From: Anthoceros angustus
Lineage: Eukaryota > Plantae > Anthocerotophyta
Length of the DNA stretch: 64,000 bases
Direction of reading: 5' to 3'
Assembly (NCBI GenBank): GCA_010909165.1
Contig: VJWM01000011.1
Span: 1,550,001 to 1,614,000 of the forward strand
Below, piece after piece: positions 3,401 through 57,802 of this stretch. Numbering within the stretch: position 1 is the stretch's first letter; each line of letters starts with the position of its first letter. A program made the translations under genes and the position numbers. The notes under the pieces are model-generated. The model searched no databases. It worked only from the letters and a program-made list of their open reading frames with translations, and was not told the DNA's origin.

Positions 3401-3939
3401 GCAATTGGGTACCTTCTCCAAGGCTGGCCACACTTGCAATTGAAGCCTTGGAGAAGGGGATTCAGCTGCAAGTGTGGCCACACTTGCACACGCTAGTAGG
3501 ACGCGCACAAATGTCCCACAGGTCTGGGCACCGCCATGCCATGAAAGGGACTGAGGTAAGCTCTGGTTCGATGAAAGCCACCAGAATTACCAGATACTAT
3601 CTCGTTGCGGTTAAGGATGGATTCAAAGCACAAAGATAACACATGGAGCGCCAGTCTGCCCGAAGCAGAAGAGAAGTGGAGCAGCGGCAGGCTACCGATC
3701 AGAACGTGAAGCGGAAGCTACGAGTTGCGGCCGGGCAAGGGCATTCCGTAGGTAGACTGTCTAACAGATCAATCAGACATTTGAGTTTCTCGAACTCTAA
3801 AAATAAGGACAACAGCACCAGGTCGCTTGTTGAGGCATGATGGTAAGCTTCGGCAGCAACAGGCATTAAGCCAGGCACCCCACAATACGAATAGACCCAC
3901 TAGACTAATTGGGTGCAAAGGTTCCGAAACCTTGACACG

Positions 3940-5471
3940 CTACTTCACAAAGAGATACTTCTGCAACTTCAGGGTTACATACACTAATCCCAACAAGACA
4001 GGTACCTCAATCAACGGGCCAATGGTTGCAGCCAATGCCTCTTGAGAGTCTATGCCAAAACTGCCCACAGCCACGGCTATGGCAAGCTCGAAATTGTTGC
4101 TGGATGCAGTGAACGACTGAGTAACAGCCTCTGCATAAGGGATGCCCAGACGACGACACAGCCACACAGATGAGAAGAAAACGATTGTGAAGTACAGAAG
4201 CATAGGGACCGCCACTCTTGCCACGTCCCCGATGTGGTCGACAATCTGATGAGCTTGGATGGAGAACATCACAAAAATAGTGTACAGCAGGCCAATAAGA
4301 GCCCAGGGCGCTATGAAAGGTATGAACTTGGTGTCGTACCACTTTCTACCCACGGTGTAACGTAGGAGTACCTTGTGATGAATCCAGCAGCCAGAGGAAC
4401 TGAGAAAAAGCAGCACACTTCTGGCGATACCCCAGGCCCCTACATCAATGCCCTTGCCCTGGAAACCACTTTAAGATAGAAGAGAGAAGTGGAGTATACA
4501 ACACCATCTGCATCACAGAATTGATGGCCACCAGTACTGCACACAGCTGTCCATCTCCCTTGGCCAGATCATTCCATATGAGCACCATGGCGATGCATCT
4601 GGCAATCCCCACCAGAATAACCCCTGCCCTGTAGTGCTCAAGATCCGGAAGTGTGGCCCAAGCAAGGCCTGTCATGAGTGCAGGGCCCACAAGCCAATTC
4701 AGAATGAGGCTCAACACCACATTTCGCGCCAGTCCTCCAGTCTTGATTGTTTTATAAAGAACTTCATACCGAACTTTGCAGAGAACTGGATACATCATGA
4801 CCCACAGTCCTACGGCAATAGGCAGAGAAACAGATGCCAGTTTCACAACCTCCAGTCTCTTCTTGATTCCTTTCACATAGTAACCAATAACGAGTGCCAA
4901 TGCCATGTCCACAAGTATCCAGACGAACAGGTAGCGATCTAGCAAAGACAACTTCTTGAACAGGCCTACATCTGCGATAAGTATTCATGCCGAGTAGGTC
5001 AGTCACACTCTAGGAACTCTTCAGAAGACAAAGAAAGCCAATCTTTCACGAACTGAAATGCTGTACCGGCGGAGTCGTCAGCTCCAGGCTTCATCACAGC
5101 CTCACACAAGCTCCTCCATGTGGTAGCAATATTGACACACTCGTCTGCCGATCAAACGCCTGGCAACATGCACTTTAGAGTAATTACCAAAACAGCAGAG
5201 ACACTCTCAATTTCTCACAGCACAAACATGAAACTTGCCACCAGCAAGCCTTCACGAGAGGTGGAGCTCACTTCTCTGCTGGTGCAACAATAAACCCCGG
5301 CGCAATTTTCGTCCGGCTGCGCAGCAACATCGGCTAATGCTGAACCATTTGCCACAAATCTGCAGCGCAAACCCCGTCCGCGCTCTGAATATTGAAGGAG
5401 GTCTGCTGCGCACCAACCGGGCGGCAAAGAACCTCCACTTCATCCCTTTCAAAGGGAACTTCCAGGGCCAT
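3940..5471 (-). CDS. ACR3: ACR3-family arsenite efflux transporter (copy a); 3 exons at 5471-5272, 5159-5067, 4971-3940; about 444 aa once small deletions are corrected
   Basis: Motifs LSLLDRYL, GLWVMMYPVLCKV, NWLVGP.LM, GIARCIAMVLIWN, SNNFELAIAVA and GPLIEVPVL. Phase-compatible GT-AG introns at 5271-5160 and 5066-4972. About seven 1-2 bp deletions (near 5373, 5100-5115, 4365-4480), mostly in base runs, so either assembly error or a young pseudogene. Confidence 0.88.
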
Positions 5472-8400
5472 GACTCGGCACCGGAATGTCACCTAGCGCG
5501 CTCCTCACGCCAAGGACGAATGCCGTCTCCTGATGAAGCACCCTGACAGAGATGCAAATGGCGCCAGCCGCAAAATCGCCACAAGTGAGAAGCAAAATGC
5601 TCCACGCGAATACACAGCACTGCAGCCAAATCGGATCTGCTTTCGGGCTAACAAAACGATAGATGCACTGACTCCAAGGCCTTGACAAACATGAAAGATG
5701 GTACACCACGAACACCAATGTGCTGCTTCCCTCTCCCGCTCATACGATGCATTCCTGCAGAATACACTTCCCAGTTTGTGGCCGACGGACAACCACCTGC
5801 CGTCAGCACAGATCATCAACTCGGTGGAGAGCAACAACGGGTTGAGCTTCCCACCGGCGTCACAGCCAGGGGCCAAGGCCAGCTCGGCAGCAACGATCTT
5901 GGGAGAGCCTGCTAAAGGCGGGCCGGACCCACATTATACTGTACACCGTGGCAGATCGAACACGAGAAGCCGGTTCCTGGGTATATCGGAAGCCGGGAGC
6001 CGGTAGCACCCTCTCTCTACAAGCATGAAACCCCGTACGGCCTCATTTCGGCTCATTTTTTTTGGGTCGCGCGGAGCGGCTGCCTCCGCAAGCTCCGTTT
6101 TACGGTCCGTTTTGGGCGGTGTCCACCGCTTTTGTTTTGCATTTAGAGTTTTGTATTTAGGGTTCTTAGTTAGGGTTTCTGGTATATGTAATTATATTTT
6201 TCTTTTCTGTTGTTTCGTTAATCAGTATTCAAGACAGTTATGTCCTAATTAGGTATATTTTTTATTACTGACATTTTTTTCCCCAACAGTTTTCAGGGCT
6301 CTAACGTTGTTATGGTTTTTGACCGTTTTATGTTGCCCCTACGCATTATTGCTCGATCAATTAGCTTATTTTAGTCATGTTGTAGTATAATGGATGTCTA
6401 ACATTTTTATGTTGTTCCTTACCATAGTACCTCTGTGTTTTTGGTCGCATGGGTAATTTTCAGGTGGGCGGCATGTTCCCTCTTCTATTTTGCATTTTGT
6501 ATTCAGTTGCTTTTTCTAATACTTTTATGGATTTTAACACTGTTATAGCTTCTAATAATTTTATGTTGTTTCTTATCAAAATTACTTTATTTATCATCAT
6601 ATTCTACTGATTTTGTATGTCACAGCAATGACCAGGCGACAGCAACACAAGCCCGGATATTAGACTCGCAACCCTAGACTGAACAGCAATATATTTGGCA
6701 TATACTTTCATTCTCGTAATTAGAAAATAGAACTAATACATGTAATTCAAGTAATTAGTTGAATAGCCTATTTAACTTTCTTGACCTGCACCACCATACA
6801 TGTACAAGACTTAATGGTCATTTGCTGCACTTCTCTTTATAGTAAGATATCAACATCACCTAAATTGTATGTCTCCAACTTACGGTCATTGTTTACGATA
6901 TCCCTCCATGTCCTACATCCCGTTCCATTTCAGCAATCTTGGCTGCCATCCCTGAATTCCATGTCTACAATATAGTAAAATAAAACATGAATAATAATTC
7001 AACAATAATAATAATATAAAGTATAAAATCAAACTTAAGTTAAACTTAATCAGAGCAATTGAGCGAGCGGAAGGGCAAGTATAGTCGGGAGGGCGGGAGG
7101 ACTTGGGGTATAGAAGAAAGCATGAGCCGGTGTCGTAGAGAGAAGGTACACCGGAGGACCCGGTTCACATCCGCCACCGTGTACCGTATAATGATTGTTG
7201 TGGGTCCGGCCCGCCCATAGAAGAGACGCGGGCGGATGTCGATCCAGATGCGCTTGGGGTCCATGTTGGGATGGGAAATGAGATACCTAGTCTACTTTAT
7301 TTGTGCATTTCAAGACCAGGGCTATTTCGGGACAACAGCCGCTGGCAAGCTGCACAGAAGCCTATCCAAGGTTGGAAGCGGCACCAAACCAACCAACCAT
7401 ATGAACTCGGAGTTCGATGTCTTCTCAAACCAAAATTTCATAGCCGAGGAGTTACTGTTACCAGGTCCAGATCCTGGAGCGGCAGATTCATCTGCATCTG
7501 GGAGACCTCGATTCATCCGCATCCGGGACTACCAGGTGGCCCTTGGAGGACGACGAGGGCAGATTCTTCAACCTACGAGTCTCATTGAATGGTTTTTGAC
7601 GACAGGAATTTGTCGGAGGGGGCCAGCTTTTTACCTCCACCGATGAGTTGATTCAAATCCCAGGATTGCAATGGCTCTGGTATGACAATCAATTCTATCA
7701 ACCAAGGAGCTTCTGAGGAAAAAAATTGCATCTGGCTAGGAATGCCAGCCATTGCCAGGATGGAGGAGCGGAAGGTTCATCTGCATCCGGGACGGAATCT
7801 GTTGGTGCTTCAAGGGCCGCTGACTTGGTGTGCGTGCGTTGCAAGCGTCGATCAGGAAGCATCTTGCCTGCTCAGCGCTGCCTCAGCATTGCGCGATCTG
7901 CTGTGGAAGACTCTTCTGTCCAGGAACCAGCGTCGGCCAGCCAGGCTCAAGAATATCCGGATTACTGTACAGCTTCGATAGATAGGGAGCACGTCTGTGC
8001 GCGGATGGGACCCAGCATCTAGCTGCGTTTTGGGCTTTGAATTCGGAGGAGACTGGAGGAAGCACCGGTGGATGAGGTGCAAGATTGGTGACTTGCATTC
8101 GAGAACTGAATGTGGCGTCTGGCTTGGTTGTTGGATTGCGAGAGGCAAGGGGGACTGCATGCTAGCACGGTGCACTGCACATGGACTGGCTCCTCCGAGG
8201 CTCAAATTGCATGTATCTACCAACTCCGGAGATCACACGCCTGGAACGGGTACTGGCTCGAGATTGTGAGAAGTATTCACCGTACGTGGTGCTTAACTGG
8301 GGAGCTTGGAGATGTTGAAAAAGGAGCGCAACAATGTCGAAGCTCTGTCTCTCATACCTTCTTAGCAAAGCGCGCATTTGATAGAAAATAGAGGTATGGG

Positions 8401-8708
8401 TCGAAACCTTGGCTTTGGTGCTGCGTTGAGAAGGAATTGACGAGGAGCTTTTGCCGTGCTCATTTTGATACACGGAGCCCGCGATAGAGATCTTGCCAGG
8501 CGGGTGATGAAACAAGTTTTAAGCATCCAACACAAGCATAACAGTTTTCGAGTCGTTGATTGCTACGAGCGAGAAATGCACCAAGCCTCCCTATCACACA
8601 CACACACAACTACCATAATTAAACAATAGTCGACTGCTAGACTGTCGTCGGAAGCACCATGCCCTTGCTTGCCTGTAAGGTAGAGGGAGCAGATCTGCAA
8701 AGTGGCTG

Positions 8709-9197
8709 TCACACAGATGCGGTTGCAGTTGCGGCTGCGGCTGGCTCAGGAGGTGGTGGATGGACCAATTCTTCCTCTTGGCCCTGGTCTTGGGATTTGG
8801 CATAGCCTTGCTCTTGCACAAGGAGCTGGATGCGGCGCTTGATGTCATCCCTAATGAGGCGGACGGTTTCCACGCTCTGGCCCTTGGGATCCTGCAGCTG
8901 CCAGTCTACCCGCTGCAGCCCGGGTACGTATGGGCAAGCTTCCCCGCATCCCATGGTGACCAGCAGCTTGCTCTTCTCCGCAACCTCCTTGGTGAGCAGC
9001 TGCGGCTTCTTGTCCGACAGATCGATCCCGACCTCCTTCATGGCCTCCAGGACCTCCGGGTGCACGCGGCTGCCGGGCACACTCCCCGCCGACACGGCGT
9101 ACGCCAGCTTGGGATCCGCCAAAGCGTCGAACCAGGCTGCCGCCATCTGCGACCGCCCCGCATTGTGCACGCACGCGAACAGGATACAGTCTGCCAT
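8709..9197 (-). CDS. arsC: Bacterial-type arsenate reductase, LMW-PTP fold, thioredoxin-coupled type; 162 aa, intronless CDS
   Basis: Uninterrupted ORF with P-loop C9-VHNAG-R15-SQMA, resolving pair TMG-C84-GEA-C88-P and DW..QD103-P. An in-frame TGA two codons upstream fixes the start. Low-complexity tail EEELVHPPPPEPAAATATASV. Confidence 0.9.
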   Translation of the reverse strand: MADCILFACVHNAGRSQMAAAWFDALADPKLAYAVSAGSVPGSRVHPEVLEAMKEVGIDLSDKKPQLLTKEVAEKSKLLVTMGCGEACPYVPGLQRVDWQLQDPKGQSVETVRLIRDDIKRRIQLLVQEQGYAKSQDQGQEEELVHPPPPEPAAAATATASV

Positions 9198-9542
9198 GCC
9201 TCAATCTTGCGCTGCCTTCCTCACCCTAGAAGCATGCTTCTTGCCAGGAGAAGTAGCCGCAGTCGGCCCGGCCGTGGAACCGTGGAATGCGGAAGGTGGC
9301 TCTCTCCGATTCTAGAATATCCGGGTTGGCCCTTGAGATGTGAGCAAGTTGCTCCTGCGAAAAGCGCCTTCCAGACACACTGGACGATAAGCAAAAAAGA
9401 GAGGAAACAGCAATACCGGTAGTATCACCTGGCTTTTAGACTTCCTGCTGTTTTTCTTCAGCAATCAGAACGCGGAGCGAACAGAACACGGGGTAGATAG
9501 CTTGAATTTGATACCTTTCATACTTTCGCACACGCTGTGTCA

Positions 9543-10974
9543 CAAAGAGATGCTTCTGCAACTTCTATGTCACATCCACTAATCCCAAGAAGACAGGTAC
9601 CTCAATCAACGAGCCAATGGTCGCAGCCAATGCCTCTTTAGACTCTATGCCAAAACTGCCCACGACCACGGCTATGGCTATGGCAAGCAGCAAGCTCGAA
9701 ATTGTTGCCGGATGAGTAACAGCTTCTGCATAAGGGATGCCCAGACGTCGACACAGCCACACAGATGAGAAGAAAACGATTGTGAAGTACAGCAGGATAG
9801 GGACCGCCACTCTTGCCACGTCCCCAATGTGGTCGACAATCTGATGAGCTTGGATGGAGAACATCACAAAAATGGTGTAGTAAGCCAATGAGAGCGCAAG
9901 GCGATAGGAAAGGAATGAACTTGGTATCGTACCACTTTCTTCCCATGGTGTAACGTAGGGAGTGCCTTGTGATGATTCCATCAGCCAGAGGAACTCCAGG
10001 AAAACGCAGCACACTTCTGGCAATAGCCCAGGCCCCCACATAAATGCCCTTGCCACTGGAAACCACTTTAAGGTAGAAGAGAGGAAGCGGAGTATAAAAC
10101 AACACCTGCATCACCAGTATTGCACACAGCTGTCCATGTCCCTTGGCCAGATCATTCCATATGAGCACCATGGCGATGCATCTGGCAGTGTCCACCAGAA
10201 GAACCCCTGCTCTGTAGTGCTCAAGATCTGGGATGAGGCTCAACACCACAACCCGAGCAAGGCCTCCAGCCTTGACCCATCTTGTAAAGAGCTTTCTTAC
10301 CGAACTTTGAACAGAACTGGATACATCATGACCCACAGTCCTACGGCAATAGGCGAGATACAGATGCCAGTTTCACAACCTCCAGTTTCTTCTTGATTCC
10401 TTTCACGTAGTAACCAATAACCAGTGCACATGCCATGTCCAAAAATAGCCAGACGAACAGCTTCTTGAACAGCCCTACAGCTGTGAAACAATATTAATGC
10501 CGAGGAAGTCAGTCACTCTCTAACAACTCTTCAGAAGACAAACAAATCCAATCTTCCACAAACTAAAGTGCTATACCTGCGGAATCGTCAGCTACACTCT
10601 TTTTTACAGCCTCGCACACAGGCTCCCCTCCATGTGGTAGCAATATTGACACACTCGTCAGCCGATCAAACCTGGCACAACATACACTGAAAGTAATTAT
10701 CAGAGGGAATCTCAACTTCTCACAGCACAGACAATTAAACTTGGCGCCACCGACAAGACATCGATGAGAGGCCAAGTTCACTTCTGTGCTGGTGCAACAA
10801 TAAAACGCTGACTGAGTCTTCGTCAGGCTGAGCAGCAACAGTCGAACCACTCGCTACAAATCTGCAGCGCAAACCCCCGTCCGCGCTGTGAAAATCGAAG
10901 GAGGTCCGCTGCGCACCAACCGGGCGGCAAAGGACCTCCACTTTGTCCCTTTCAAGCGGAGTTTCCCGGGCCAT
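9543..10974 (-). pseudogene. ACR3: ACR3 paralogue (copy b), decayed; same 3-exon layout (10974-10782, about 10672-10577, 10480-about 9543)
   Basis: Colinear with copy a, including both introns. Deletions of 21 nt (LSLLDRY), 54 nt (LNWLVGPALMTGLAWATL), 15 nt (AINSV) and 13 nt before NNFE, plus frameshifts and a TAG at 9565-9567. Confidence 0.85.
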
Positions 10975-11721
10975 GACTCGGCAACGGAATGTTGCCTAGC
11001 GCGAGCCTCAGGAGTCCGTCACTGCGCCAGGGCCTGCACAGTGCACACATGGTCCGCAAGACACAAGTCCGAGACAAGTCAGAAACACAGGCACGAGCAA
11101 ATTTGAAGGCCATCACCTCATGCACCGAGATGCAAATTCCGCCAGCTGCAACATCATCAGAAGTGAGGAAGAAAATGCACTCTACTTCACAGCACTGCAG
11201 GAAAATCGGATTTGCTGTGGAGCTAATCAAAACGATCGCTGCACTGACTACAGAGCCTTGACGAACAAGTAGCTCACAACGCGCACCAATTTTCAGCTTC
11301 CCTCTCGTGCTCCAATTTTGCGTTTATTAGAAATGATTTAGTGCAACATATCAAAATGTGTTAGAGACTGAATGATGGCTGCGTCCATAGCCACTCTGGA
11401 GATCGAATATGGATGTTGAGACTGAGGAACACTTTGTTTTCCTCTGTCTCATATATGAAGATATTAAGTATATATTTATCAATTTATTTACAACATCTCA
11501 ATCTTTACTAAAGGGTTTTTTCAATTATTTTGATCCTATTATTGTAGGAGTTTGCTTGAAACAAATATGAAAGATGAGGACCACCCAAATTCAACTTCTC
11601 AACTTGCCGGATATTTGATTATGCTTCACAGCACTAGTCTCTAAGCCAAACTCAGAATAGCAGTTAATTTTCACGATAGTTTCCATGTATATCTGTCAAA
11701 TCAGTCCCATGACGGAAATCA

Positions 11722-12390
11722 TCCTTAGTGGACTTAAATAAAATTCTTCTTCTTCTTCTTCCGTTATGAATAGTGCCCTAAAAAATAGGTCATAAAGAGT
11801 GCTCTAAAAATAATAAATTTGTATATGTCGCGCCATAACCGCATAGCTGCTCACTTCTCTCACGAAACAAACCAAGTCTACCATGAACCAAGCTCTATTA
11901 TGCTTTACACTCCATTTACCTATTTCTATTGCATAAAATAAGAGCCGCAAATGGGATTGCTGATGTGCAAAAATCAAAGTATTTCGATTTCATTCACTCG
12001 CACACACACACACTGATTGGGCTCTGCTGCATACGGGATCTGTGTGTCTACACACATCCGCCTATCTCGGCACTTCCTTCGGTAAACATCAGCAATCCAC
12101 CTCCTTCGGATTGCTCCTTCCTTTTATGAGCCATCCTCCTCCATGCCATAAATGTCTTTGCTATCTTGAGGAGATGTGCGCCATGACCGAGGCGCCGCCT
12201 TTGCGTTAATGCTCTTGTCTTCCTCTTGACTTTCTGCCACACGCCATTTATGCACATACGGCTTACACGGGCCTTTCCTTACAATACTCGTACTATGCAG
12301 CTACCATACGATTGCTATACGGTTATGCTTACCAACATGCACATCCCCTAAAAGAAGAAGAAGAAGAATTTTATTTGAGTCCACTAAGGA
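11722..12390. repeat. 39-bp inverted repeat pair (11722-11760 and 12352-12390) ending in AATAAAA-(TTC)n
   Basis: TCCTTAGTGGACTYAAATAAAATTCTTCTTCTTCTTCTT and its reverse complement, one mismatch. Confidence 0.8.
12001..12350. repeat. Dispersed repeat of about 350 bp, copy 2
   Basis: Direct match to 1-355. Confidence 0.85.
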
Positions 12391-15719: not shown

Positions 15720-16200
15720 AGATGGGCATTTCGTCATTCCCTAATATGTACATTTCATTCCATCATGTCGCGCTAAGGCATTTCGTCATTCGATCATGTT
15801 GGCTTGGGCATTTCGTCATTCCATCATGTCGGGATGGGCATTTCGTCATTCGATCATGTCGGCTTGGGCATTTCGTCATTCCATCATGTCGGCATTTGGG
15901 CATTTCGTCATTCGATCATGTTGGCGATTGGGCATTTCGTCATTCCATCATGTCGGGCAGTTGGGCATTTTGTCATTCCATCATGTCGGGCAGTTGGGCA
16001 TTTCGTCATTCCATCATGTCGGGCAGTTGGGCATTTCGTCATTCCATCATGTCGGGCAGTTGGGCATTTCGTCATTCCATCATGTCGAGGCAGTTGGGCA
16101 TTTCTTCATTCCCTAATGCGAGTGATTGGGCATTAGTCATTCCCTCACGTCGGGCAGTTGGGCATTCCGTCATTCCCTCACGTCGGGCAGTTGGCCATTT
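15720..16200. repeat. Tandem array of an approximately 33-bp unit GGGCATTTCGTCATTCCATCATGTCGGGCAGTT
   Basis: More than a dozen units; this array explains the repetitive ORFs at 15722-16417. Confidence 0.9.
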
Positions 16201-16299
16201 TTGGAAGTTCATCTCTCTTGTTTTACAATGTGCATCCCACCCTCTTGTGCACACCGATACTCGAGCGCACAAGCACATAAAGCATAAATTCTGGTTGAG

Positions 16300-18550
16300 G
16301 AGCTTATCTCCTTGTCAAGGAAGAGAACCGCTTGTCATGATTGCAAGCGAGGAGACAAGCAATCTAGTGGCAGCAAAATTGCTCTTGGTGAGCTCACCAG
16401 CACGCGCCTTGCAATAATCTATGACAAGAAGGTATGGATCTTTCCAGACTTCAACTTTATATTCTTTTCAACGAACAAATGCCGGAGTATTCTCTGTAGA
16501 AGAGGATGCACATGTTGCCCATGTTCGAGGCAACATCGTATTGCATGTGAGGCGCAGACAATCTCACCCAACAACAAGGAGCGTGACACCTTCAACGAAC
16601 GGTTAATTTGGCGGAGGACTTACATGATGCCTTCGGCCGTATACATAGTTTGACGCTGAAGGGAAAAAGGACTCCTCAGTGGATTCCAGCTCCTTGTTAC
16701 ACCAGCCAAAATGTGCCCCTTCATATCACAAAGTGCTGCGTGTGCACCAGGTTGTCCTCCTGTTGTTTGCATCCCTTGGCTCTTGTTTCAATTTGCTGTC
16801 CATGTCTCTAACGACTATTGGTTCCATGGTGATTTGCAGGGGGTTCGGATGCTATGAGTTCGTTTTCCTCCCCTGTGGGCACTGTTTTCATGATGCATGC
16901 CTCTACCAACACATGTTGGTCACGTGACTGCCCCAATCCCGCTTGTTGTCTTCCGCCTCGCAAAGTGGCTCAAGGCTAAGGGTTGGCTATTCATTGGCAC
17001 CGCCCCGCACTGCCGATGATTGATTTGTAGCTCCCACTATAAATAGTGTTCGATGGCTTTTTGAATCAGGATGGAATCTGAAAACGGAAGCAATAACGAT
17101 TTTCAAATCCAAGAAGGTACTTGTTTTCGTCTTATACGTTTTTTTACTTTGCTTTTTCTTTTACTAACTTTTAGTGTGTCAACCCCCTGCAGACAGCAAC
17201 TACAGGACGCCACCCTGTGAGCGCCCCACTGACAAATTGCTTCCCACCCATGGGGATCCAGGATATGACGCTAACGCAGAGTTTCAACCACCACTGCTGG
17301 AGATAAGAAAGATCGAAAAATGATTGCTGTTAGTCCTGTATGTTCTCGTTGATCAGAGTCTAACAAAACCCGTGGGTTGCAGTCCTCTGCGAGCACACAA
17401 TGTTCTCTGTGATGGACAAACAAGACCTTAAGCATCTTTGCGAGATGCACCTTGATTGAATAAGATAAAGAAGGTAAGCACTTTTCTTTAATTCATAAAC
17501 TTGATCTAATTATGCTCAAATCCAAAATCTTAACCCTAAATTTATCTCTCAGGATATCAAAAGAACCTTGAACAACTCAATTGGGAACGTACACTTGTGG
17601 AAAGGTTTAATGGACACGATTTCAATGCAAACAATGTTGGAGGGATATCAAAGTTCAATCCAGCAATCGAGGTAATCAAAATTACATTCATACCTTCTTT
17701 GCTTCTTCACATTTACCTTCTTATAACTTAACACATTCGAATCTTTGGAAAACAAGTCTGCAAAAACATAAAGGACAAAGTCGATAAGATTGACAACAAC
17801 ATTGACAACGCAGCCATCTCCAATCGTATACAAAATGTATTAGGTATATAATTTGCATTAATATGATTTTGGTTTAAGAAAGTAATGATTTTGGTTTTGA
17901 TCGTGCAAAAAGAGAAAAATTGATGACTTCAGGAGGATGGACCAACTTACGGGCCGTCACTTGAGTTCACCGAGTTTGGAAAGTGGATGAGCAATTTTCA
18001 ATATCCACCACTTTTCAAGACTTTAAAGATAAGTATTCGCAATTTGGGAGCATAGTCTAAAAGAGCACAAACCCATCTTGAATGAAGATGGGTCCAACCC
18101 AACATTCGAAAGCAAAGACAAATCCAAGCAAGTAAGCGATAACTTCTCTTTTCACTATTATTTTCATTACATATAATTCTATGTAATGTAATGTATGCAT
18201 TGAATGCGAGATAGGGCAGCAATTGAAAATAAGGAGTTGAAAACGATGACTTGTTGTCTCTCATGGAAGAACCAGAGACAACTAAAACATTCAAAAGGTA
18301 CATCGTTTGAAAGGTAATATCCGCTTGCATTCCAAAAAATTCTAATGTTTATGTTTCTTCGTAACATACGATCACATTTCCGCAGCAGGGGAATCTTCAC
18401 AAAGACGTGTTTAACGCTTGTCGAAAAGGTATATGCAAAGAAAGATCTTCTCCGAATTGAAATGGAGGTAAATGACTAATTACTTTTACTTTTTGTTTGT
18501 AGTTATCGGAGAATCAAAACGAGTTGTTTTCACTCTTTGAGGTGAGTACT
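16300..18550 (+). pseudogene. Degenerate multi-exon gene with a RING-H2 finger, probably transposon-borne
   Basis: Removing intron 16751-16839 (GT...CTAAC...GCAG) joins KCCVCTR to GFGCYEFVFLPCGHCFHDACL; DCPNPAC follows after a frameshift. Further AT-rich GT-AG intron-like segments at about 17117-17191, 17474-17551 and 17844-17932. Many stops. Confidence 0.5.
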
Positions 18551-39558: not shown

Positions 39559-42500
39559 CGGCTCCGATTGATGGTGACCGAGCCATGCCCGCTACACGCA
39601 CAACCCTAAACAAAAGCATACTGTAGACTCCAACTTTGTACCCAGCGGGCCAAGAACAAGCCGGGCACAACCCTAAAAGCACCGATCACCTCGTGGCAAG
39701 CTCGCGCCTCCACGGATCCGGTTGTAGGGTGTAGACGCAGCTGTGGTGATCCTACAAGGTGATACTATCCCACCACCGTGCACATCCAGCTTCCCCTCAG
39801 TTCCATGAAAGCCCATCAAGAACCAGCTTAGAAATACAATGAACCAAGGACTACCTAAACCCAAATGCCACCTCGCCTACCACTTCCCCGCCACCTCAAT
39901 CCACCACTCCCTTGCCAACCCTTGCCACCCCGTACCAGCAGTCCCCTGCCTCAACCCACCACTCGTCCCGCCACATATACCCACCACATGAGCTAAGTCC
40001 AAAGCTCTCATCAAAGAAAACGTTTATCAAACATGAGATCTAAGTAACTGCGCTCCACATATCAGTTCCAGCTCATGCTACATAGTCCACATCGGCGGAC
40101 CTCAAGATAAGCCTACTCTACCTGTGTGCCGAGATCCTCCTCCTTGTGTGGTGTGGTGACCTCTTCTGACAGCAACCCTAAATCGAAGTGCGGCGAAGTG
40201 CCGCGCGGCAACTCAAAATTTGTTCAGTTACACGCTGATGATCCGTTTGCTCATCTCGTAAATATGCTACAAAATGATTTAGGTAAGGGCCAGAGTGCCC
40301 GCTTACCTGCCTGTTCTCGGGCCCACTTCGTAAACATAGTGTGACAAGTGCCCGCTGAGTGAGACAATGCCCATCCCAAGTAGTCTCTAAATTTAGACTT
40401 TCATTTTGAATATTTTCATGAGTATTTTAATTTTAAATTTTAATCTCATGTAGAAGTGATATATTTGTATATCTTGTAAAAAATCAGACGAGTTTAGAGA
40501 AGAAATAAATTAGTTAAAATTATTAACGTTACATGAGGACAAAATAACAATGTTTCGTCCGTTTCTCACTAATGTGAGCACCAAACCATGCTTACACCCT
40601 GAAGGTAGGACCTGCAGCGCCTCTTGCAATTCAGCATTTGAAGTGCTTAGCATCGGCGCCGGCCATGGCCACTTTCCTGACAAGTTGCGGGTGGCAGGTA
40701 GAGGCTGGCAGTGAATGCGGGGCCCTGTACGACCTCTTCAAGCAACATTGTGATGGGAAGTCTGTGTTCCCACGGTTCCATATGCATGTCCAGTACGCAA
40801 CCCGGCATGGGGGTTGTTTGTCTGAAAGGGAGACGGTTGATTTAGGCACTTCGGGCCGATCGGCGAGGCATGGCGGCAATTCTGGCAGAATCCCATGTTC
40901 TTGAACTGCGTGTTTGAGGCGAGGGACAACCCCGGGGCTGGGACACGCACCACATCAAAAGGGAAGTCCATCTCGGATGAGCAAATGTGTGGTGAGTCGC
41001 GGTGTTTGGAGTGTTCATCATAGCCCGCAGCCTTTCATTCTAACACGCAGCCTCGACTCATGCTCGGTTCTTTGGCTACCTTGTAGTACATGGTCCGGCG
41101 ATCATGCAAGTGTCATGCCCCATGACCGTACACCACGCCCTTGCCCGCGATGGCTGGCGGCGGTGTGGCAAGATGCGCCGGCTCATCGTTCTTGAAGAAG
41201 GCCTTCAAGGCGGACATGAAAGCGCATACCCGGAGGTGATGGGTGTGTTGTCTTTAAAGGCCTCGTGGCAAGTGCGAACCATCAACATGCGGCCATCAAG
41301 GAGGCCGTTGCCCTCATCACTACCGGGGATCCGAGTTTTTCGACATTTTGCACGCTTCGGGGACCGAAATTTAGCATGGAGGTGAGCATGGTGCGTGAGA
41401 GGCTAACCGAGGAGGTCTTGTTTAAAAGTGCTTGCATGTTGGGGGCTTGTCGACGGAGATTGCGGTGCATGTATTTTGACGCTTCTGGGCCAAGGTGATG
41501 CCCATTGTGAACACATATCTTGGAGGTGGTCGCTTTTTTTTCTCCGGTGCTCAAGGATGTACGAGATGACTTCCTGAATCTGGGACGACTTTTGAGGCAT
41601 GCACCCCGAGTCAAGAGCATGTTCGCCATGGCGCGGCGGAGGGTGTCTTTGCGGAAAGGGTCAGTACACCTTCATGCCGCACCTCCGCTGTGTTCTGGGT
41701 GAGGCGCCAATTGTGGTGTTTGAAGTACCATTGATGACGGAGGAGACTCCCCACGGCCATGACGTCGTGGGACATTGCTCCTTCCATTGTATGACTCGAG
41801 GACACTATGTGCGGCGAGTCGCCATTTCTCACAACACGGTTTATGGCATGGCCTAGCGTAGATTGCCGAGCCATTGTAGAGGAAGGCCAAGTCGTGTGTG
41901 ATGTGTGATGTTCTTGGGATTGTGGACTACATGTTTCGAAATGCCATCCCATTGGTAATTATTGATCTGCAAGTTGCGTGTTCATTATGCGGTGTTAGCT
42001 TGTGAGTATGTGGGGGAATAGCTTGTGCACACAAAAGGAGGCGAATTAATGCACCCGCTGCGTCGAGGACAACGCGTGGCGTGCGGAATCTTAAGAAAGT
42101 GCGGAGGAGCAATGACGCCGCGCCTGCGGGTGCCTCCGAAAATCGCGATGCCGCCTATTCAATTTCAAGCGGAAGGAAGAGTCCATGCTGGCGCGTTGAG
42201 GAGACTCCATTTCTCGCGATCGAGTTGTGGAAATCAGCCATGGCGGGTCATCAGAGAGCACCGTTTCCGGCCGAGGGCGCGACAGCGAAACACATGGGTG
42301 AAGGGACATCGGAACTAATCGCGGTCGGTCGGTGTGCAAGACTGTGAGGCGGGCGTGAGCAGTGGGGTTGGGGCGGGCAAGGCTAAGGAAAGGAGATGCA
42401 TTCATTGAGCATGGAACGAAGAAGGCGGCGGTGGCTCGTCGCGGTTGTTTTGGCGGATGGGGCCACACGAGGCGGGCGGGATCCGTTGGGGCGGAGCGAG

Positions 42501-43849
42501 CGAGGGACGCAGGCGTGGGCGGCGATGCGGCGGGCGCAGCGTTCCGGTGACACGGTAGAGGCGTCGACATCATCAGCCGTCCATGCCCGGTGTTCGCGCT
42601 TGCGGGCGACATTCGCCGTCTGCCCGCGGATGGGGCCAGGGACATGGTGGCGCATGTCTTGACGGTTGGAGACAAGGGCTGCGGGCTTGGACTCGTGGGT
42701 GGTTTTAGTGCGTGCAGGATGGAACCATGCGAAGTGGAGGATGCCCGGATGAGAGGTGGGCAATGCAGTTGTGACGGCGGGGGTTGCGGCATGCACCGAG
42801 GGTATCTATTTCAGCACATGGACACATTTGAAGTGCGGAGGCTGCGAAGAACAAGGAGCCTCCCGGCTAGGATTGGTGGGTTGGGGCGGGTCCAACGCGA
42901 AGGAGAAGGGGATGCGGGCGATGGGTTGGCCGGCGTTGAGAAGAGTCCGGCAATGGTGGTGTGGTGAGGCGGATGCAGCGAAGTCATCTTCGCTTGGTGA
43001 CGATGGTCGACGGTGTGCGTGGGTGGTTCGATCGCGGCCACGTGTACCATCGCGCGGTGGTGGACACGATGCACCTGCAGCTGCGGGGCCATGCATCCTC
43101 GCGAAAAGCATGCGTGCGACACGCAAAGGCGATGGGTGGCTGGGTGGAGTGGGGATGTGACACTACGGTGCATCGTGTATGGACCGGCCGACAGTTCCGC
43201 TTAGATGTGTGGACGGCGGGGACTACATGGGCATGTTGGCGATGGCATGCGGTCGGATCGGCGGGCGATGACAATTGCCAGCGGGAGGCGAGGGGTGCGC
43301 CGGTCGGCAGCAATGTCGGTTGCCGTTCTCCTTGACAACCAGTGCGTATGTGTTGTCGTGGACAAGGCGTGAGCTTCTTTGCGAAGAGGAGGCGGCTCAC
43401 GTCATCCTCGAGCACTGCCTTTATGGGGGAGCCGAAATTCCAGTGTAGGGGCTGCTTGCTACAAAGAGTCTCGTGTTTCTCTTCAACGCGTGCACACCGG
43501 TGGCCTATCAGTAGAGTTGTGGGGTGGAAAGGCGTAGGAATAATGGTGGGGTATTTCTTTGAAACATTGTATCGTGGATTTGTGGAAAGAAGCAAGGCGG
43601 GGGCATGAATGTCCTTAGGCATGAAATTTGGAAGCAACCAGCGTTCCGAAGTGAATAAGGCACATGCGTATGGGGCCATAGCCAATGAAAAGGAGACAGT
43701 GGCAGGAGGATAGAGCCGAGAGATGGCGGAACACCTGGGGAATCATGGGGGACGGCCCGTGAGATCAGTAGGGAGGTTCGGGAGCAGCGGGGCGATGGAC
43801 GGATTGATGGCGAGGCGAGGGGCGGATGAGGCAGCAGCGGTGTGCAGGC

Positions 43850-44480
43850 GAAGGAGGAGATGAGGGTGATATGTGGGGTGGATGCGGGGGGCATGAGCAG
43901 AGGGGATGGGGTTGGATGGAGGGCGGGCGGGCGGGGGCAGCGGAGGCGGGATGAGGAGGCGGGCGCGGGCGGGGCGAGGCGGGCGGGGAGAGGAGGCGGA
44001 GGAGCGCGGGCGGGCGCGGAGTGGGAGGGGCAAGGCAGGCGGGCGGCGCAGGCGAAGGAGGAAGGCGGAGGCGGGGCGTGGCGCCATCCGGGCGAGTGGC
44101 GGGCGGGGTGAGGCCGTGGGCGCGCGGAGGGAGGAAGGAGGGGCGGGGTGTGCGGGAGGGAGGGGCAGGCGGAGGCGGGGCCGAGGCCCGAGGCGGGTCT
44201 GGCAGGCGGAGGGGCAGCACAGGCAATGAGGAGGATGGCGGAGGGGCGGAGGAGGCTTGGTGCGGCCGTATGGCAGTGGCGGCGGAGGGGAGATGGGCGT
44301 CGCAGCAAGGGAGATGGAGGCCGAGGCGCGGAAGGACGGAGGGGGGATCCGATGGAGGAAGGAGGAAGTGTCGAGGTGGAGGTGGGAGCCATCCCCGACT
44401 CTGAGCAGGCGGCGGGGAGAGGAAGGCAGTCGGCCGGCTGCCCTTGAGTGGAGACTTTGAGGAACATCGCAGAGGGCGGA
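43850..44480. repeat. Purine-rich (G/A) low-complexity GC-rich tract
   Basis: Dense GG/GGG runs on the plus strand; the overlapping Pro/Gly/Arg-rich ORFs are compositional. Confidence 0.75.
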
Positions 44481-44589
44481 GGAGGGCGGACTGACATTGA
44501 AAGGGCTCGCAGCGAGCCGGGATGCACCAGGAGGTGGTGGCCGCACGGTGCCTGTGATGGAGAGGTCGCCACGCCGGTCCGCCGAGAAC

Positions 44590-45290
44590 AATAGAAGACG
44601 CCCGCAACCTCATCCTACAAAATGTGACCATCACGCGTGGTGTGAACTGGGAGTGAGGATTGTGCAAGATCGCGGGCCGGCCGCCGTGCCTGAGGTGTGA
44701 CGGCAGATTGCGAGCCATGCACCGGAGGCCATGGAATGAGGTCGCAGCGATTCGGGCGGTGCAATACACGAATGTAATAATCGATGTACATGTGGCATGG
44801 ATCGTGGAGTGCGGAACTTGGAGCACATGGTGGTCGCCGAGTTAGCCGCAAAGACAACGCATGAAGCTAACGGGTGCGAGTGTGCGGCCGCAGCAGACGC
44901 ACAAGATGTACATGTTCCACTTCGTGGTGCACGCGTATAGATGGGGCAACGACTACATAACGTGGGCGGGCCGGAGGACAACAAGCGGCAGAACAATCTA
45001 CAAGGCGACGCTGAGGCGGTGCATTACGAGCCATGCGGTAGGAGGCCATGGAATGAGGTCGCAGCTGCGCGTTGGTGCAATACGAAACAGGCTCGTGTAC
45101 ATGTGGCACATGTGAGTGTCGGAACTTGGAGCACATGGTGGTCGCTGGTCGATAACCCGACTGCGCCTGACAAGCTAAGGTCACAGTGTTGTCTTTCGGT
45201 ACGACAAGATGTACATGTTCCACTTGAGGTGCCGCGGCCATAGATGGGAGCAGCGCTACATAGTGGCGGTCTTTGGAGGACAACAAGCGG
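44590..45290. repeat. Diverged tandem duplication with a period of about 310 bp
   Basis: GGAGGCCATGGAATGAGGTCGCAGC near 44725 and 45040; GATGTACATGTTCCACTT near 44907 and 45208. Confidence 0.7.
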
Positions 45291-52231: not shown

Positions 52232-54924
52232 CTAATAGTCCAGGACAGCCTCGATCCTTATGGGGACACCGCTATTGGGGCATGGCAGACCCGAAACGTC
52301 GAGGCCAGTGTCTGGCTTATCTACTGTCCACCTGTTTCGACACCAGGTCGGCACCCGTCGGTTAGCCAAGAAGCATATTTGGGGATGGGGATTGTAGATG
52401 ACCTGTGAGCTATTGCAGAAGAATGGAGACGCACCTGAATTTGAGCATCATGTGATGCAACATCACTTTCATGTCCATAAGTGCCAGCTCCTTCCCAAGG
52501 CACAATCTGGTTCCACCTCCAAATGCCAGCAGGGTGTAAGGTTTCGGTGGCACCTGTTGGTAGACAAGGAACGCAGAGTGTCACAAGGTTACTCCCAAAA
52601 TGTTGTTGGATGTCTATTAGTCGGAGATGACTGTATGATTTCTAATGCCGAATTCAAGCATCAGGCTGCTTACATCGAAGCGAGAGGGATCGAACGTCTC
52701 CGGGTCTTGGAAGACTTCTGGACTATGGTGCAAGTCGTGAGTGTCATGCACAAGGCTCCAGCCTTTAGGAATGTGGTATCCTGCAGGTGGCACATGTGTC
52801 AGGCACGGAGAAAGCTTCGGGTAAATCATTGCGGCAATCAAGCACTAGTCTGTGACCCATGTTAGGACTCCCTGCTTGGAGTAGGGAAGAAATCTGAACG
52901 GTTGGCGATGCCAGGTGCAGCATACATGCCGTTGAATGTGAAGTCCTCCTTGACCTGTCGATTCCACCAGAAAGCGAGAGAAGAAACTCGGAGTGCCTCG
53001 TTGATCACCTGGAGGCACACGTACATGAGACAAAGACAGATGGATCTTAATTAGGAGGCCAGATTCCAGTGAGTAGCTGTGCGGCACTAGGGTGGAGAAT
53101 GTTGAGGTATCTGAGTCTCACTTTCACTGTGTAGGCCATCGGTTGGCCGAGATCCGCCCATGTCAGTGCCTCTCCAGCTTGTTTGTTTCTTCTCACTGCC
53201 AAATGCTCCGCCTACAGTTCAAGCAGGAAAACAAAACCTCAAGGTGAAGTTGGCTTCGATCCAAATTGTTCCAAACGAATGTCGTTTCCTATGGACGACG
53301 TCTGTGACAGCCAGGGGCCACGCTCACCAGCAGCTTCTCCTTGACGCTGGGATTCTCATGCAGCAGCTTGAGCTTGAAGCCAGTGTGTTGGTGGTGGTCT
53401 CAAACCCAGCAACGATCAGGGTGACCACATTGTCCCTCAGCTGCTCGTCGTCCAGGGCAGGCTTGTCGCTGGAAGAATCGGGGTCGACTGCCTTCATCAT
53501 TTCACTCAGCAGGTCATTGCAAACGATTTTCCCGCTCCTTCTCAGCGCGATTTCGGTGTCGAACATTTCGCCCAGTTCCTTTCTTGCCTGCAAGCCCAGT
53601 CCACTTGCGTTGTTAGATTTATTGCGGCCCCAGGGCAAGGAGAAATTGGACACTGTGCGCCAAATTGGGCCTCGAACGAATTGGCACCTGCATCGCTTTG
53701 TGAAAGGCCAATCCAGGAAGATTGATGGGCACCGCGAGCAAGTTGTTTCTCACCGTTTCGGTGAGCCGCTCACCAGCAGCTTCTCCTTGACGCTAGGATT
53801 CTCATGCAGCAGCTTGACAAGCCAGGTGAGTGTGTTGGTGGTGGTCTCAAACCCAGCAACGATCAGGGTGACCACATTGTCCCTCAGCTGCTCGTCGTCC
53901 AGGGCAGGCTTGTCGCTGGAAGAATCGGGGTCGACTGCCTTCATCATTTCACTCAGCAGGTCATTGCAAACAATTTTCCCGCTCCTTCTCAGCGCGATTT
54001 CGGTGTCGAACATTTCGCCCAGTTCCTTTCTTGCCTGCAAGCCCAGTCCACTTGCGTTGTTAGATTTATTGCGGCCCCAGTGCAAGGAGAAATTGGACAC
54101 TGTGCTCCAAATTGGGCCTCGAATGAATTGGCACCTGCATCGCTTTGTGAAAGACCAATCCAGGAAGATTGATGGGCACCGCGAGCAAGTTGTTTCTCAC
54201 CGTTTCGGTGAGCTCACGGCCCCTGTCACGCACCGGACCAGGACCCCAGCTCAGCACCAGTCCCACGATCACATGATAAGAGAACTGCGCACCGTCAGCA
54301 ACTACCCATTACAATCCCAAGCTCACTAACATTGCAATTTGCGCACAAACGGCAAGAGTGGCCCAATTCTGGTGCGCTCACCTTGGCCATGTCGTGCCTG
54401 ACGACGGGGACGTCGCCCAGCTTCCAGGAACCGAGCGTCTCGAGAGTCGCTTGCTCCACCACGGGCAGATACTTCCTAATCCTCTCGCCCATGAAGGCCT
54501 CGTTGAGCATTTTGCGATAGAGCTTGTGCCTGGGGCCGTGCACATTGAGCATGGACTCCTCGCCGACCAGCTTCCTCCCGGGGAGGATCTGGTGCGCATG
54601 CACCAGCTTGTCCTCGCTGGCGACCAAGAGTTTGGCCGCCTCGGCGCCCCTGAAAAACACATACGGACTGCCCAGCAGGTGCGACTTGAACACATCGCCA
54701 TACTTGCGAAAGCGCTTTGTCATGAATGTCTCCAGATCCCCGCTCTTGAAGTAGCCCATGAGCTCCATCGTCTCTCCCAGCAGCGGGAAGCCCATGGTCC
54801 CCGGCAGCTGCTTGGAGCCCTTGGGCGCCCATATCCCCCTCCGCTCCCAGTACCTCCACACTGGCCAGCCCACAGCAAGCACCGCAAGAGCCACCCCTAT
54901 CTCCACAGCCAACGTCACGTCCAT
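52232..54924 (-). CDS. Cytochrome P450, CYP85 clan (copy A); 8 exons at 54924-54382, 54284-54135, 54034-53774, 53211-53122, 53008-52930, 52780-52674, 52553-52435, 52331-52232; about 482 aa
   Basis: LPGTMGFPLLGET, I-helix AGFETT, K-helix EALR, FDPSRF and heme motif FGGGTRLCLG. Exon sizes of 150/90/79/107 nt are typical of CYP85-clan genes. The summed CDS of 1449 nt stays in frame. Intron 5 has a GC donor. Confidence 0.88.
53324..54190. repeat. Internal tandem duplication of about 430 bp covering part of exon 2, intron 2 and exon 3 of P450 copy A
   Basis: 53324-53760 repeats 53770-54190; the extra copy is frameshifted in the I-helix region. Confidence 0.85.
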
Positions 54925-55370
54925 GGCTGCCCTGCGATTCTTAGAAGAACGGAATGCAATTTCAAGAATGCCATGCCGCAGCAATCCCTCCTGCTTTCGC
55001 ACATTGCTGACTTCCGGGTGAAGTGTGGACTTGTCAAGTCGCAAGCAGATGCTGCAGCTTTTTTCTCAAAGAATCTCCAACTTTTCTGAATACAGTGCCG
55101 TCGAAACATGCGACAGCAATGGGACTGCCAGAGGGACGCAGACGTCGGGCTGCCCTGCGATTCTTAGAAGAACGGAATGCAATTTCAAGAATGCCATGCC
55201 GCAGCAATCCCTCCTGCTTTCGCACATTGCTGACTTCCGGGTGAAGTGTGGACTTGTCAAGTCGCAAGCAGATGCTGCAGCTTTTTTCTCAAAGAATCTC
55301 CAACTTTTCTGAATACAGTGCCGTCGAAACATGCGACAGCAATGGGACTGCCAGAGGGACGCAGACGTCG
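54925..55370. repeat. Apparently exact 223-bp tandem duplication immediately upstream of the P450 A start codon
   Basis: 54925-55147 matches 55148-55370. Confidence 0.9.
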
Positions 55371-55618: not shown

Positions 55619-57802
55619 CTATGGGAGTGAGCGCTCCTGCTGCCTACTGTCCTCCGGGATTGTGGCTGTTTGGAAGGAGCCACAGGACTCCATGTGCAAT
55701 CTTATCATAGCTCGGTTGGCAGATTGATAGTCCTGAACAGCCTCGATCCTTATGGGGACACCGCTATTGGGACATGGCAGACCCGAAATGTCGAGGCCAG
55801 TGTCTGGCTCATATACTGTCCACCTGTTTCAACACCAACTCAGCACCCGTCGGTTAGCCAAGAAGCATGTAGGATAATATTGCGAATGACTTGTGAACTA
55901 TTTATTGCAGAAGAATGGGGACGCACCTGAATTTGAGCATCATGTGATGCAACATCACTTTCATGTTCATAAGTGCCAGCTCCTTCCCAAGGCACAATCT
56001 GCTTCCACCTCCCCACGCCAGCAGGGTGAAGGCTTCGGTGGCACCTGTTGGTAGCATCGGAATGAGGGGTGTCACAAGATAACTCCCAAGATGTTGTTCG
56101 TTGTCTATGATTCGGAGACGTCTGTAATGATTCTAGTGTTGAATTCAAGCATCAGGCTCTTACATCGAAGCGACAGGGATTGAAGATCTCTGGGTCTTGG
56201 AAGATTTCTGAACTATGGTGCAAGTTGAGTGTCAAACACAACGTTCCAGCCTTTAGGAATGTGGTATCCTGCAGGTGGCACATGTGTGTGTCAGATAGTG
56301 AGAAAGCTTGGGAATATCATAACGGAAATGAAGCACAGTGATCACCATGTTAGGACTCCCGCTTGGAGTAGGGAAGGAATATTTACGGTTGCCAATGCCA
56401 GGTGCAGCATACATACCGTTGAATGTAAAGTCCTCCTTGACCTGTCGATGCAACCAGAAAATGAGAAGACACTCAGTGCCTCGTTGATCACCTGCATGCA
56501 CACATGAGACAAGACAGATGGATCTTAGCTTACGCCAGATTCCAGTGAGTAGTGGGCCACAACTAGGTTGGAGAATGTTGAGGATCCGAGTCTCACTTTC
56601 AAGGTGTAGGCCATCGGTTGGCCGAGATCCGCCCATGTCAGTGCCTCTCCAGCTTGTTTGTTTCTTCTCAGAGCCAAATGCTCAGCCTACAGTCACAAAC
56701 GCAAAAACCAAACGCCAAGGTTGGGCTCGCCTGGATCCAAGCTGTTCCAAACCAATTTCGTTTCCTATGGACGACGTAGCTGTGTTATATCCCCAGGGCC
56801 AGGCTCACCAGTAGCTCCTCCTTGACGCTGGGATTCTCATGCAGCAGCTTGACAAGCCAGGTGAGTGTGTTGGTGGTGGTCACAAAGCCAGCAACGATCA
56901 TGGTGAGCACATTGTCCCTCAGCTGCTCGTCGTCCAGGGCAGGCTTGTCGCTGGAAGAATCGGGGTCCACTGCCTTCATCATTTCGTTCAGCAGGTCGCT
57001 GCGAACAAATTTTCCGCTCCTTCTCAGCGCAAATTCGGTGTCGAACATTTTGCCCAGCTCCTTTCTTGCCTGCACGCCCAATCCACTTGCGTTGTTCGGT
57101 TTATTGCGGCCCATTGCAAGCCTTGGGAGAAATTGGACACCTGTCCTCCAAATTGGGCCTGGAATCAATTCGCACCTGCATGGCCTTGTGAAAGGCGAAT
57201 CCAGGAAGATTGATGGGCACCGTGACCAAGCTGGTACTCACTGTTTTGGTGAGCTCCAAGCTCCTGTCACGCACTGGACCAGGACCCCAGCTCAGCACCA
57301 GTCCCACGATCACATTATAAGCGAACTGTGCACCGTGAGCAGATACCAGTTAGCAAACATCACGAGCTCTGCAAAAACATTGCAATTAGATTGCAGACAA
57401 ACGGTAAGAGTGGCCCAATTCTGGTGTCCTCACTTTGGTCATGTCGTGCCTGATGACGGGGACGTCGCCCAGTTTCCAGGAACTGAGGGTCTCGAGAGCC
57501 GATTGCTCCGACACCGGCAGATACTTCCTCATGCTGTCGCCCATGAAGGTTTCGTTGAGAATTTTGCGATAGAGCTTGTGCCTGGCGCCGTGCACATTGA
57601 GGAGCGACTCCTCGCCCACCAGCTGCCTCGCGGGGGGGAACTGGTGCGCCTGTACCAGCTTGTGCTCGACTGTGACTAAGAGCTTGGCCGCCTCGGCGCC
57701 CTGAAAACACATACGGACTGCCCAACAGGTGCGACTTGAACACATCGCCATACTTGCGAAAGCGCTTTGTCGTGAATGTCTCCAGATCCCCGATCTTGAA
57801 GT
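55619..57802 (-). pseudogene. CYP85-clan P450 copy B, exon 1 interrupted by a Copia insertion; the 5-prime end resumes near 62190-62290
   Basis: Colinear with copy A across all exons. Homology stops at 57802 (TTGAAGT|TGTTAG) and resumes after the 3-prime LTR (AAGCCCATGGTCCC.GCAG.TGCTTGGAG). Several small deletions; the copy A stop codon is read through. Confidence 0.85.

Follow-up and report, generated by a model that had tools for sequence, protein, structure and literature searches.

Does the nuclear genome of a hornwort encode an arsenate reductase of bacterial type, and, if so, where does the gene come from and which partners does it work with? The question is raised by a short minus-strand open reading frame, here called arsC, in a stretch of 64,000 nucleotides of Anthoceros angustus DNA (the window, within which all positions below are counted). 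By an exact coordinate match to the tandem-gene table of the published genome (PMC7027989, supplementary file 3), the window belongs to scaffold17, at an offset of 1,550,000. The same supplement places gene AANG005601 at window 8519-9197, with an LMWPc domain and the same start codon as the arsC reading frame. It is annotated only as a low-molecular-weight or protein tyrosine phosphatase (PMC7027989), a description that hides the function proposed here.

The features of the locus are collected in the table below. The earlier note on this DNA, made from the letters alone, had described an intact, intronless reading frame; it indeed runs from an ATG to its stop codon with no internal stops, and the corresponding RNA is unspliced. 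The catalytic set recognized in that note (C9, R15, C84, C88 and D103-P104) is complete and, together with the M-G-C-G-x-x-C-P segment, invariant across 41 sequences, i.e., the arsC protein and 40 bacterial homologues. Likewise, what had been taken for an added low-complexity C-terminal tail corresponds to about 30 residues (133-162) which are predicted to be disordered and have no counterpart in the 40 aligned bacterial proteins. A TGA lies two codons 5' of the arsC ATG, so that an N-terminal extension is impossible without splicing. Given that C9 is already catalytic, this arrangement leaves no space for a targeting peptide, and the product is predicted to be cytosolic. The gene is also visibly GC3-rich, as had been pointed out, with values of 0.83 (core) and 0.42 (tail), yet it is within the host range: in the window, the neighbouring ACR3 exons have values of 0.52-0.59 and a cytochrome P450 exon has 0.75. 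The median GC3 of the bacterial homologues, 0.83, equals that of the arsC core. Base composition thus says little for or against a foreign origin.

Table. Features of the arsC locus and its ACR3 neighbours (positions in the window)
Feature	Position	Strand	Basis
arsC coding sequence, 162 aa plus stop, intronless	8709..9197	-	ORF list, Pfam LMWPc, homologues
P-loop C-V-H-N-A-G-R-S, codons 9-16, predicted nucleophile C9 and R15	9150..9173	-	alignment
C-G-E-A-C, codons 84-88, putative resolving cysteine pair C84/C88	8934..8948	-	alignment
D-P, predicted general-acid motif, codons 103-104	8886..8891	-	alignment
Low-complexity C-terminal tail, predicted disordered, codons 133-162	8712..8801	-	alignment, pLDDT
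5' UTR of arsC, minimum extent (end of RNA contig)	9198..9483	-	RNA contig 8660-9483
3' UTR of arsC, with length-variable (CA)n near 8588-8600	8577..8708	-	RNA contigs 8577-8689
ACR3-A, intact, spliced and expressed plant-type arsenite efflux gene, AANG005600	3940..5882	-	ORF pieces, Pfam SBF on paralogue, RNA
ACR3-B, decayed ACR3 copy directly upstream of arsC, AANG005602 (9565-10974)	9530..11010	-	comparison with ACR3-A

The neighbours of arsC are two copies of an arsenite efflux gene, in the minus-strand order ACR3-B, arsC, ACR3-A. For ACR3-A the published model AANG005600 covers window 3940-5094 (PMC7027989, supplement). A 1831-nt RNA contig matches 5271-5882 of this gene with one mismatch, and in the RNA of a second species, presumably a congener, whose ACR3 exons are about 90-95% identical to those of A. 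angustus, the GT..AG intron at 5159-5270 has been spliced out. The regions of the two copies (3935-5691 and 9530-11267) form a duplication with 81-86% identity, introns included, and the duplicated block ends at 9530, 333 bp short of the arsC ATG. ACR3-B has accumulated at least nine frame-shifting indels, together with deletions of 54 and 15 nt, where ACR3-A is open; a 2-nt deletion at 9878 removes bases that are kept in the mRNAs of both species. ACR3-B is a pseudogene, and the published model AANG005602 covers it.

Both copies carry an L-R-C-R-F motif in the N-terminal exon (at about 5367 in exon 5271-5471 and at about 10869 in exon 10735-10974). In plant ACR3 proteins, this di-arginine/cysteine motif has been described as an arsenic-sensing trafficking signal (bioRxiv 10.64898/2025.12.14.694196; PMC13674352). 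The presence of the plant motif in both copies indicates that the pumps are native plant genes and that arsC is the foreign element. A joint transfer of ACR3 and arsC was also considered and judged unlikely in view of the plant-specific motif, the spliceosomal introns and the identity of only 40-56% between ACR3-A and the bacterial ACR3 genes found near arsC homologues. A fusion of ACR3 and arsC at this locus was rejected as well, with stops on both sides of the gap and an RNA contig that ends at 9483.

Beyond the window, the published array at scaffold17:1516751-1538545 continues with AANG005596 (ACR3) and AANG005598. The latter combines ACR3 and LMWPc in one model and lies about 11.5 kb below the window start (PMC7027989, supplement). 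Altogether, the published models give a total of four copies of ACR3 and two of the LMWPc domain in less than 45 kb of scaffold17. Within the window, tblastn detected no second arsC remnant, and no ArsH was noticed near the arsC locus. A direct repeat with 91% identity (2-349 and 11995-12352) brackets the block of ACR3-A, arsC and ACR3-B and possibly delimits a larger unit of duplication in the ACR3 array.

The relatives of the arsC protein are bacterial. Of 8000 scored database proteins, the 120 best are all bacterial or metagenomic (54-73% identity, with E values of the best matches of about 1e-55 to 1e-63), and some of these 120 are two-domain fusions. When one genome per bacterial species is considered, the closest relatives belong to the Polyangiaceae and other Myxococcota, the Acidobacteriota and the gammaproteobacterial Nevskiaceae (Stenotrophobium, Panacagrimonas and Solimonas), with identities not exceeding 69%. 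The 57 genome loci and 80 metagenome loci collected are likewise all bacterial or metagenomic, and none shares more than about 70% identity with the arsC protein across its full core; ACR3 lies within the flanks in only 8 of these 137 loci. In the JGI metagenomes, mostly from soil and rhizosphere, no closer donor or plant relative exceeded 69% across the complete core; a single partial match had 76% identity along 101 residues. At the DNA level, identity to any sampled bacterium is 74% or less. No plant or algal relative occurs among the best matches, in databases that are poor in such genomes. The exact arsC protein had no match in public assemblies and is not among the protein-database matches; the differing 3' end of the published model (8519 versus 8709) may explain the missing database entry.

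The phylogeny agrees with the domesticated bacterial gene proposed in the earlier note. The nearest sequences in the searches are all bacterial ArsC. In a maximum likelihood tree of 57 sequences, of which it is the only eukaryotic one, the hornwort protein is nested inside a clade of Myxococcota, Acidobacteriota, Nevskiales and Planctomycetota, from which two starred branches exclude the sequences of Actinomycetota and Chloroflexota. Within this clade the protein is part of a polytomy, with a long terminal branch of its own (0.93 versus a median of 0.15), and the tree does not single out a donor phylum. A bacterial origin of arsC at some point is very likely. The most probable source of the gene is a soil bacterium, and the divergence of about 30% from every sampled bacterial sequence most likely reflects a transfer that was not recent.

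The age of the transfer leads to the alternative that survives best, according to which arsC entered the green lineage once, or entered early streptophytes, in an ACR3-ArsH-ArsC neighbourhood, was inherited vertically down to the hornworts and was lost in most land plants. Neighbourhoods of this composition exist in Chromochloris, Coccomyxa and Klebsormidium nitens (PMC7826186), the hornwort gene adjoins ACR3 just as the algal genes do, and its long branch and its distance from all sampled bacteria would fit an old entry. Against such a history, the ArsC proteins of the algae are reported to resemble different bacteria more than one another (PMC7826186), a pattern suggestive of repeated acquisition, and the hornwort locus has no noticed ArsH. 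Moreover, the tree, with no other eukaryotic sequence in it, places the hornwort protein within a shallow polytomy of bacteria and not beyond it, and its best matches, drawn from databases with few plant and algal genomes, are without a plant or algal relative. We consider a single ancient entry unlikely and favour an acquisition from bacteria at the level of the hornwort lineage.

With regard to enzyme class, Pfam reports a single domain in the arsC protein, LMWPc (PF01451, E = 9.9e-17, residues 5-125), and no rhodanese domain of the HAC1/ACR2 type. The NCBIfam scores lie below the curated cut-offs, with 70.4 bits versus 174.3 for TIGR02691 (arsC_pI258_fam), 78.5 versus 157.6 for TIGR02689 (glutaredoxin type) and 76.2 versus 215 for NF010053. 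The protein is thus related to the pI258-type and Synechocystis-type equivalogs and is not a member of any of them. The best solved structure by sequence is 3t38, the thioredoxin-dependent enzyme Cg_ArsC1' of Corynebacterium glutamicum (HMMER, E = 2.6e-28), followed by the reductases of Synechocystis, S. aureus pI258, Cg_ArsC2 and B. subtilis. When the two are aligned by HMMER, C9, C84 and C88 correspond to C88, C162 and C166 of Cg_ArsC1', which are named as its catalytic cysteines in PMC6514093, citing Villadangos et al. 2011.

An AlphaFold (AF2) model built on 41 sequences has a mean pLDDT of 87 over residues 1-132 and of about 52-56 in the tail. Its top Foldseek matches are again 3t38 and pI258 ArsC, with a probability of 1.00 and TM scores by target of up to 0.90. 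The signature had been read in the earlier note as that of a bacterial thioredoxin-coupled ArsC such as ArsC1', and 3t38 is indeed the closest structure both by sequence and by fold. Among the Foldseek matches the arsenate reductases rank first, at 26-40% identity, whereas true LMW phosphatases have 16-25%, lower than every ArsC structure. The protein has the structural features of the LMW-PTP-fold ArsC class of pI258 and Cg_ArsC1', namely the fold, a P-loop of the form C-x5-R-(S/T), two extra cysteines and the D-P motif. It falls outside the LMW-PTP phosphatases of the ACP1, Wzb and YwlE type, with ArsC structures closer and the cysteine pair present. Alignment and model together support the assignment to the LMW-PTP fold and to a Cg_ArsC1'-like subgroup with a C-x3-C resolving pair.

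The product could nevertheless be mainly a low-molecular-weight protein phosphatase or another thiol-redox enzyme, with the adjacency to ACR3 being coincidental. The fold and P-loop are shared with phosphatases, the published annotation is that of a protein tyrosine phosphatase, and the scores stay under the NCBIfam ArsC cut-offs; set against these points, the solved structures at 26-40% identity are all arsenate reductases, the reductase-specific extra cysteine pair is conserved, and an LMWPc domain stands beside ACR3 at two places on scaffold17, which together make a phosphatase role quite improbable. The genomic context also favours the reading as an arsenate reductase, with arsC flanked by two ACR3 copies and AANG005598 nearby. 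Judging from the sequence, arsenate reductase activity is likely, and, by analogy with the bacterial enzymes, thioredoxin is its reductant with moderate confidence.

The gene is transcribed and its core is conserved. In an RNA run from the sample that also supplied short-read DNA, reads reach a depth of about 92 across 8483-9483 and are absent from the intergenic DNA to either side; the arsC depth amounts to about 40% of that of the functional ACR3 mRNA (about 232). An 821-nt RNA contig (8660-9483) is unspliced and continues through the arsC stop codon. The model AANG005601 ends at 8519, 190 bp past the stop of the reading frame, and its published 3' end is probably wrong. The 821-nt contig is a variant with 99% identity to the window copy, from which it differs in the coding sequence by six substitutions and a 3-nt deletion. 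Five of the substitutions are synonymous and the sixth is V145I in the tail; the deletion drops one codon of an Ala/Thr run, also in the tail. Codons 1-132 of the expressed variant therefore carry five synonymous and no non-synonymous changes.

Two versions are also found in the 3' UTR, where one RNA contig is identical to the window (depth 31.5) and another is a variant (84.6) with three mismatches and a 2-nt gap. The only exact RNA match to the window copy is a 113-nt contig of the 3' UTR. Within that UTR the (CA)n run at 8588-8600 differs by 2 nt among the assembly, the short-read DNA contig and one of the two RNA variants. The presence of two transcript versions suggests two expressed arsC copies or alleles, and the expressed variant may be the second copy, AANG005598. 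The variant contig was not found in the DNA run.

Could transcription be no more than read-through from the ACR3 pseudogene into a recently inactivated or functionless relic? The position of arsC 333 bp downstream of the pseudogene and the lack of a defined arsC promoter would suit this explanation, as would the RNA run of the relative, in which arsC has no coverage. Conversely, the reading frame is intact with every invariant residue kept, five synonymous changes stand against no replacement in the core, and the RNA depth reaches some two fifths of that of a functional ACR3 gene. In addition, the adjacent ACR3-B has gathered many frameshifts while arsC has remained intact, which favours selection on arsC. 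A relic is thus very improbable, and we regard arsC as a domesticated, expressed gene.

The earlier note had judged contamination unlikely because of the plant flanks and had proposed reads joining arsC to plant DNA as a check. Such a link is provided by the independent short-read DNA run of the sample used for RNA, where one contig spans 8479-9778 with no mismatches and joins arsC to the 3' part of ACR3-B. DNA read depth over arsC is 14.3, compared with 9-20 in the surrounding unique DNA, and ACR3-A on the other side is spliced. Furthermore, the DNA run of the second species contains a 229-nt contig that covers 8888-9116 with six differences (97% identity), at the same depth as the ACR3 contigs of that species. 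The integration of arsC in the plant genome is practically certain. Bacterial contamination or a chimeric assembly, which an intronless, GC3-rich reading frame with only bacterial relatives might bring to mind, is effectively refuted by the mismatch-free contig and even depth, the closely similar piece in the second species, transcription with UTRs, the DNA identity of at most 74% to any sampled bacterium and a low-complexity tail that is not bacterial-like.

How the enzyme might operate can be modelled on the characterized bacterial enzymes. The P-loop cysteine C9 would attack arsenate, and C84 would then form a C9-C84 disulfide with release of arsenite. C88 would move the disulfide to the surface as C84-C88, where it would be reduced by plant cytosolic thioredoxin and NADPH-thioredoxin reductase. 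The arsenite would finally be exported by the ACR3 pumps encoded alongside. As for the history of the locus, an arsC gene encoding the LMW-PTP fold would have passed from a soil bacterium into the hornwort nucleus and settled immediately behind a native ACR3 of plant type. The resulting operon-like ACR3-arsC pair occurs at least twice on scaffold17. Taken jointly, bacterial acquisition at the level of the lineage, arsenate reductase function and coupling to thioredoxin appear reasonably probable. A more far-reaching proposal is tentative and rather doubtful: that a land plant has built an operon-like arsenic module from a bacterial arsC that arrived, or was kept, directly downstream of its native ACR3, that the pair was duplicated as a unit, with one copy perhaps converging by read-through or fusion on the mycobacterial ACR3-ArsC arrangement, and that arsC has been kept by selection despite the decay of the adjoining ACR3.

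Some features elsewhere in the window deserve mention. Two similar blocks (53160-55089 and 56822-57832) each contain a cytochrome P450 first exon on the minus strand (54295-55044 and 57386-57832); they look like a tandem duplication, of which the second copy appears degraded. A tandem array at 15755-16000, with a period of about 30 nt and copies that are 88-90% identical, gives rise to a spurious repeat reading frame at 15722-16417. On the minus strand, 42091-44826 is a GC-rich low-complexity stretch with long, overlapping reading frames rich in Pro, Ala and Ser.

The account of horizontal gene transfer (HGT) that Zhang et al. 2020 gave for the A. angustus genome (PMC7027989) comprises 19 genes in 14 families, with other donor phyla, and its supplementary HGT text and figure legends mention neither AANG005601 nor AANG005598. 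Its filter was set to 30-70% identity to the best bacterial match and more than 150 aa, which places arsC near the filter edges. Literature searches yielded no report of an ArsC of the LMW-PTP type from any land plant, hornworts included; a catalogue of 1,809 bryophyte HGT families (PMC12513842) lay outside their coverage. The earlier note had gone further and inferred a third route to As(V) reduction in plants. The bacterial-type reductase in that claim is supported, whereas its novelty was overstated in view of the precedent in green algae and Klebsormidium (PMC7826186).

If the enzyme works as proposed, a land plant would possess a thioredoxin-driven arsenate reductase that is structurally unrelated to the rhodanese/Cdc25-like enzymes characterized in land plants and is encoded beside the pump that exports its product. 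The hornwort arsC gene would then offer a compact and testable case of a foreign gene wired into native detoxification, and also of plant genes clustered by function. Of greater interest is the repeated pairing of ACR3 and arsC, with a possible fusion in the second copy. Together with ACR3, which angiosperms are not known to possess, arsC is also a candidate part for the engineering of arsenic handling.

Several known systems can serve as a reference. The plant arsenate reductases HAC1/ATQ1 and ACR2 have a rhodanese/Cdc25 fold. The hornwort protein would share their proposed cellular job, the conversion of As(V) to As(III) before efflux; unlike them, it contains LMWPc only and would rely on a disulfide relay of three cysteines. 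With Cg_ArsC1' (3t38) it has in common the fold, the P-loop C-V-H-N-A-G-R-S, the pair within T-M-G-C-G-x-x-C-P and the D-P motif, at about 39-40% identity over 125-128 aligned columns. The differences are that the hornwort protein lacks the N-terminal region of about 80 residues of the 3t38 chain, has a disordered C-terminal tail of 30 aa according to the model, is encoded in a plant nucleus and is nearer (62-69%) to uncharacterized proteins of Myxococcota, Acidobacteriota and Nevskiales than to Cg_ArsC1'.

The mycobacterial ACR3-ArsC fusion proteins, e.g., that of M. tuberculosis, are discussed in PMC6514093. They likewise couple a pump to an LMW-PTP-type reductase, with ACR3 first, and the AANG005598 model also fuses both domains. 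In the window, by contrast, the genes are separate: a stop ends ACR3-B, a TGA precedes the arsC ATG, and the RNA stops short of ACR3-B. A parallel to the arrangement as a whole is found in the ArsB(ACR3)-ArsH-ArsC neighbourhoods of Chromochloris, Coccomyxa and the streptophyte alga Klebsormidium nitens (Foflonker and Blaby-Haas 2020, PMC7826186), where recent duplications of algal ARS genes have also been reported. The hornwort locus resembles them in that a bacterial-like ArsC stands beside ACR3 in a genome of the green lineage, again with recent duplications. It differs in belonging to a land plant, in having no ArsH in sight and in the pseudogene state of one flanking ACR3. Similar pairs of ACR3 and a bacterial-like ArsC are thus already known from green algae, and the hornwort adds a land-plant case.
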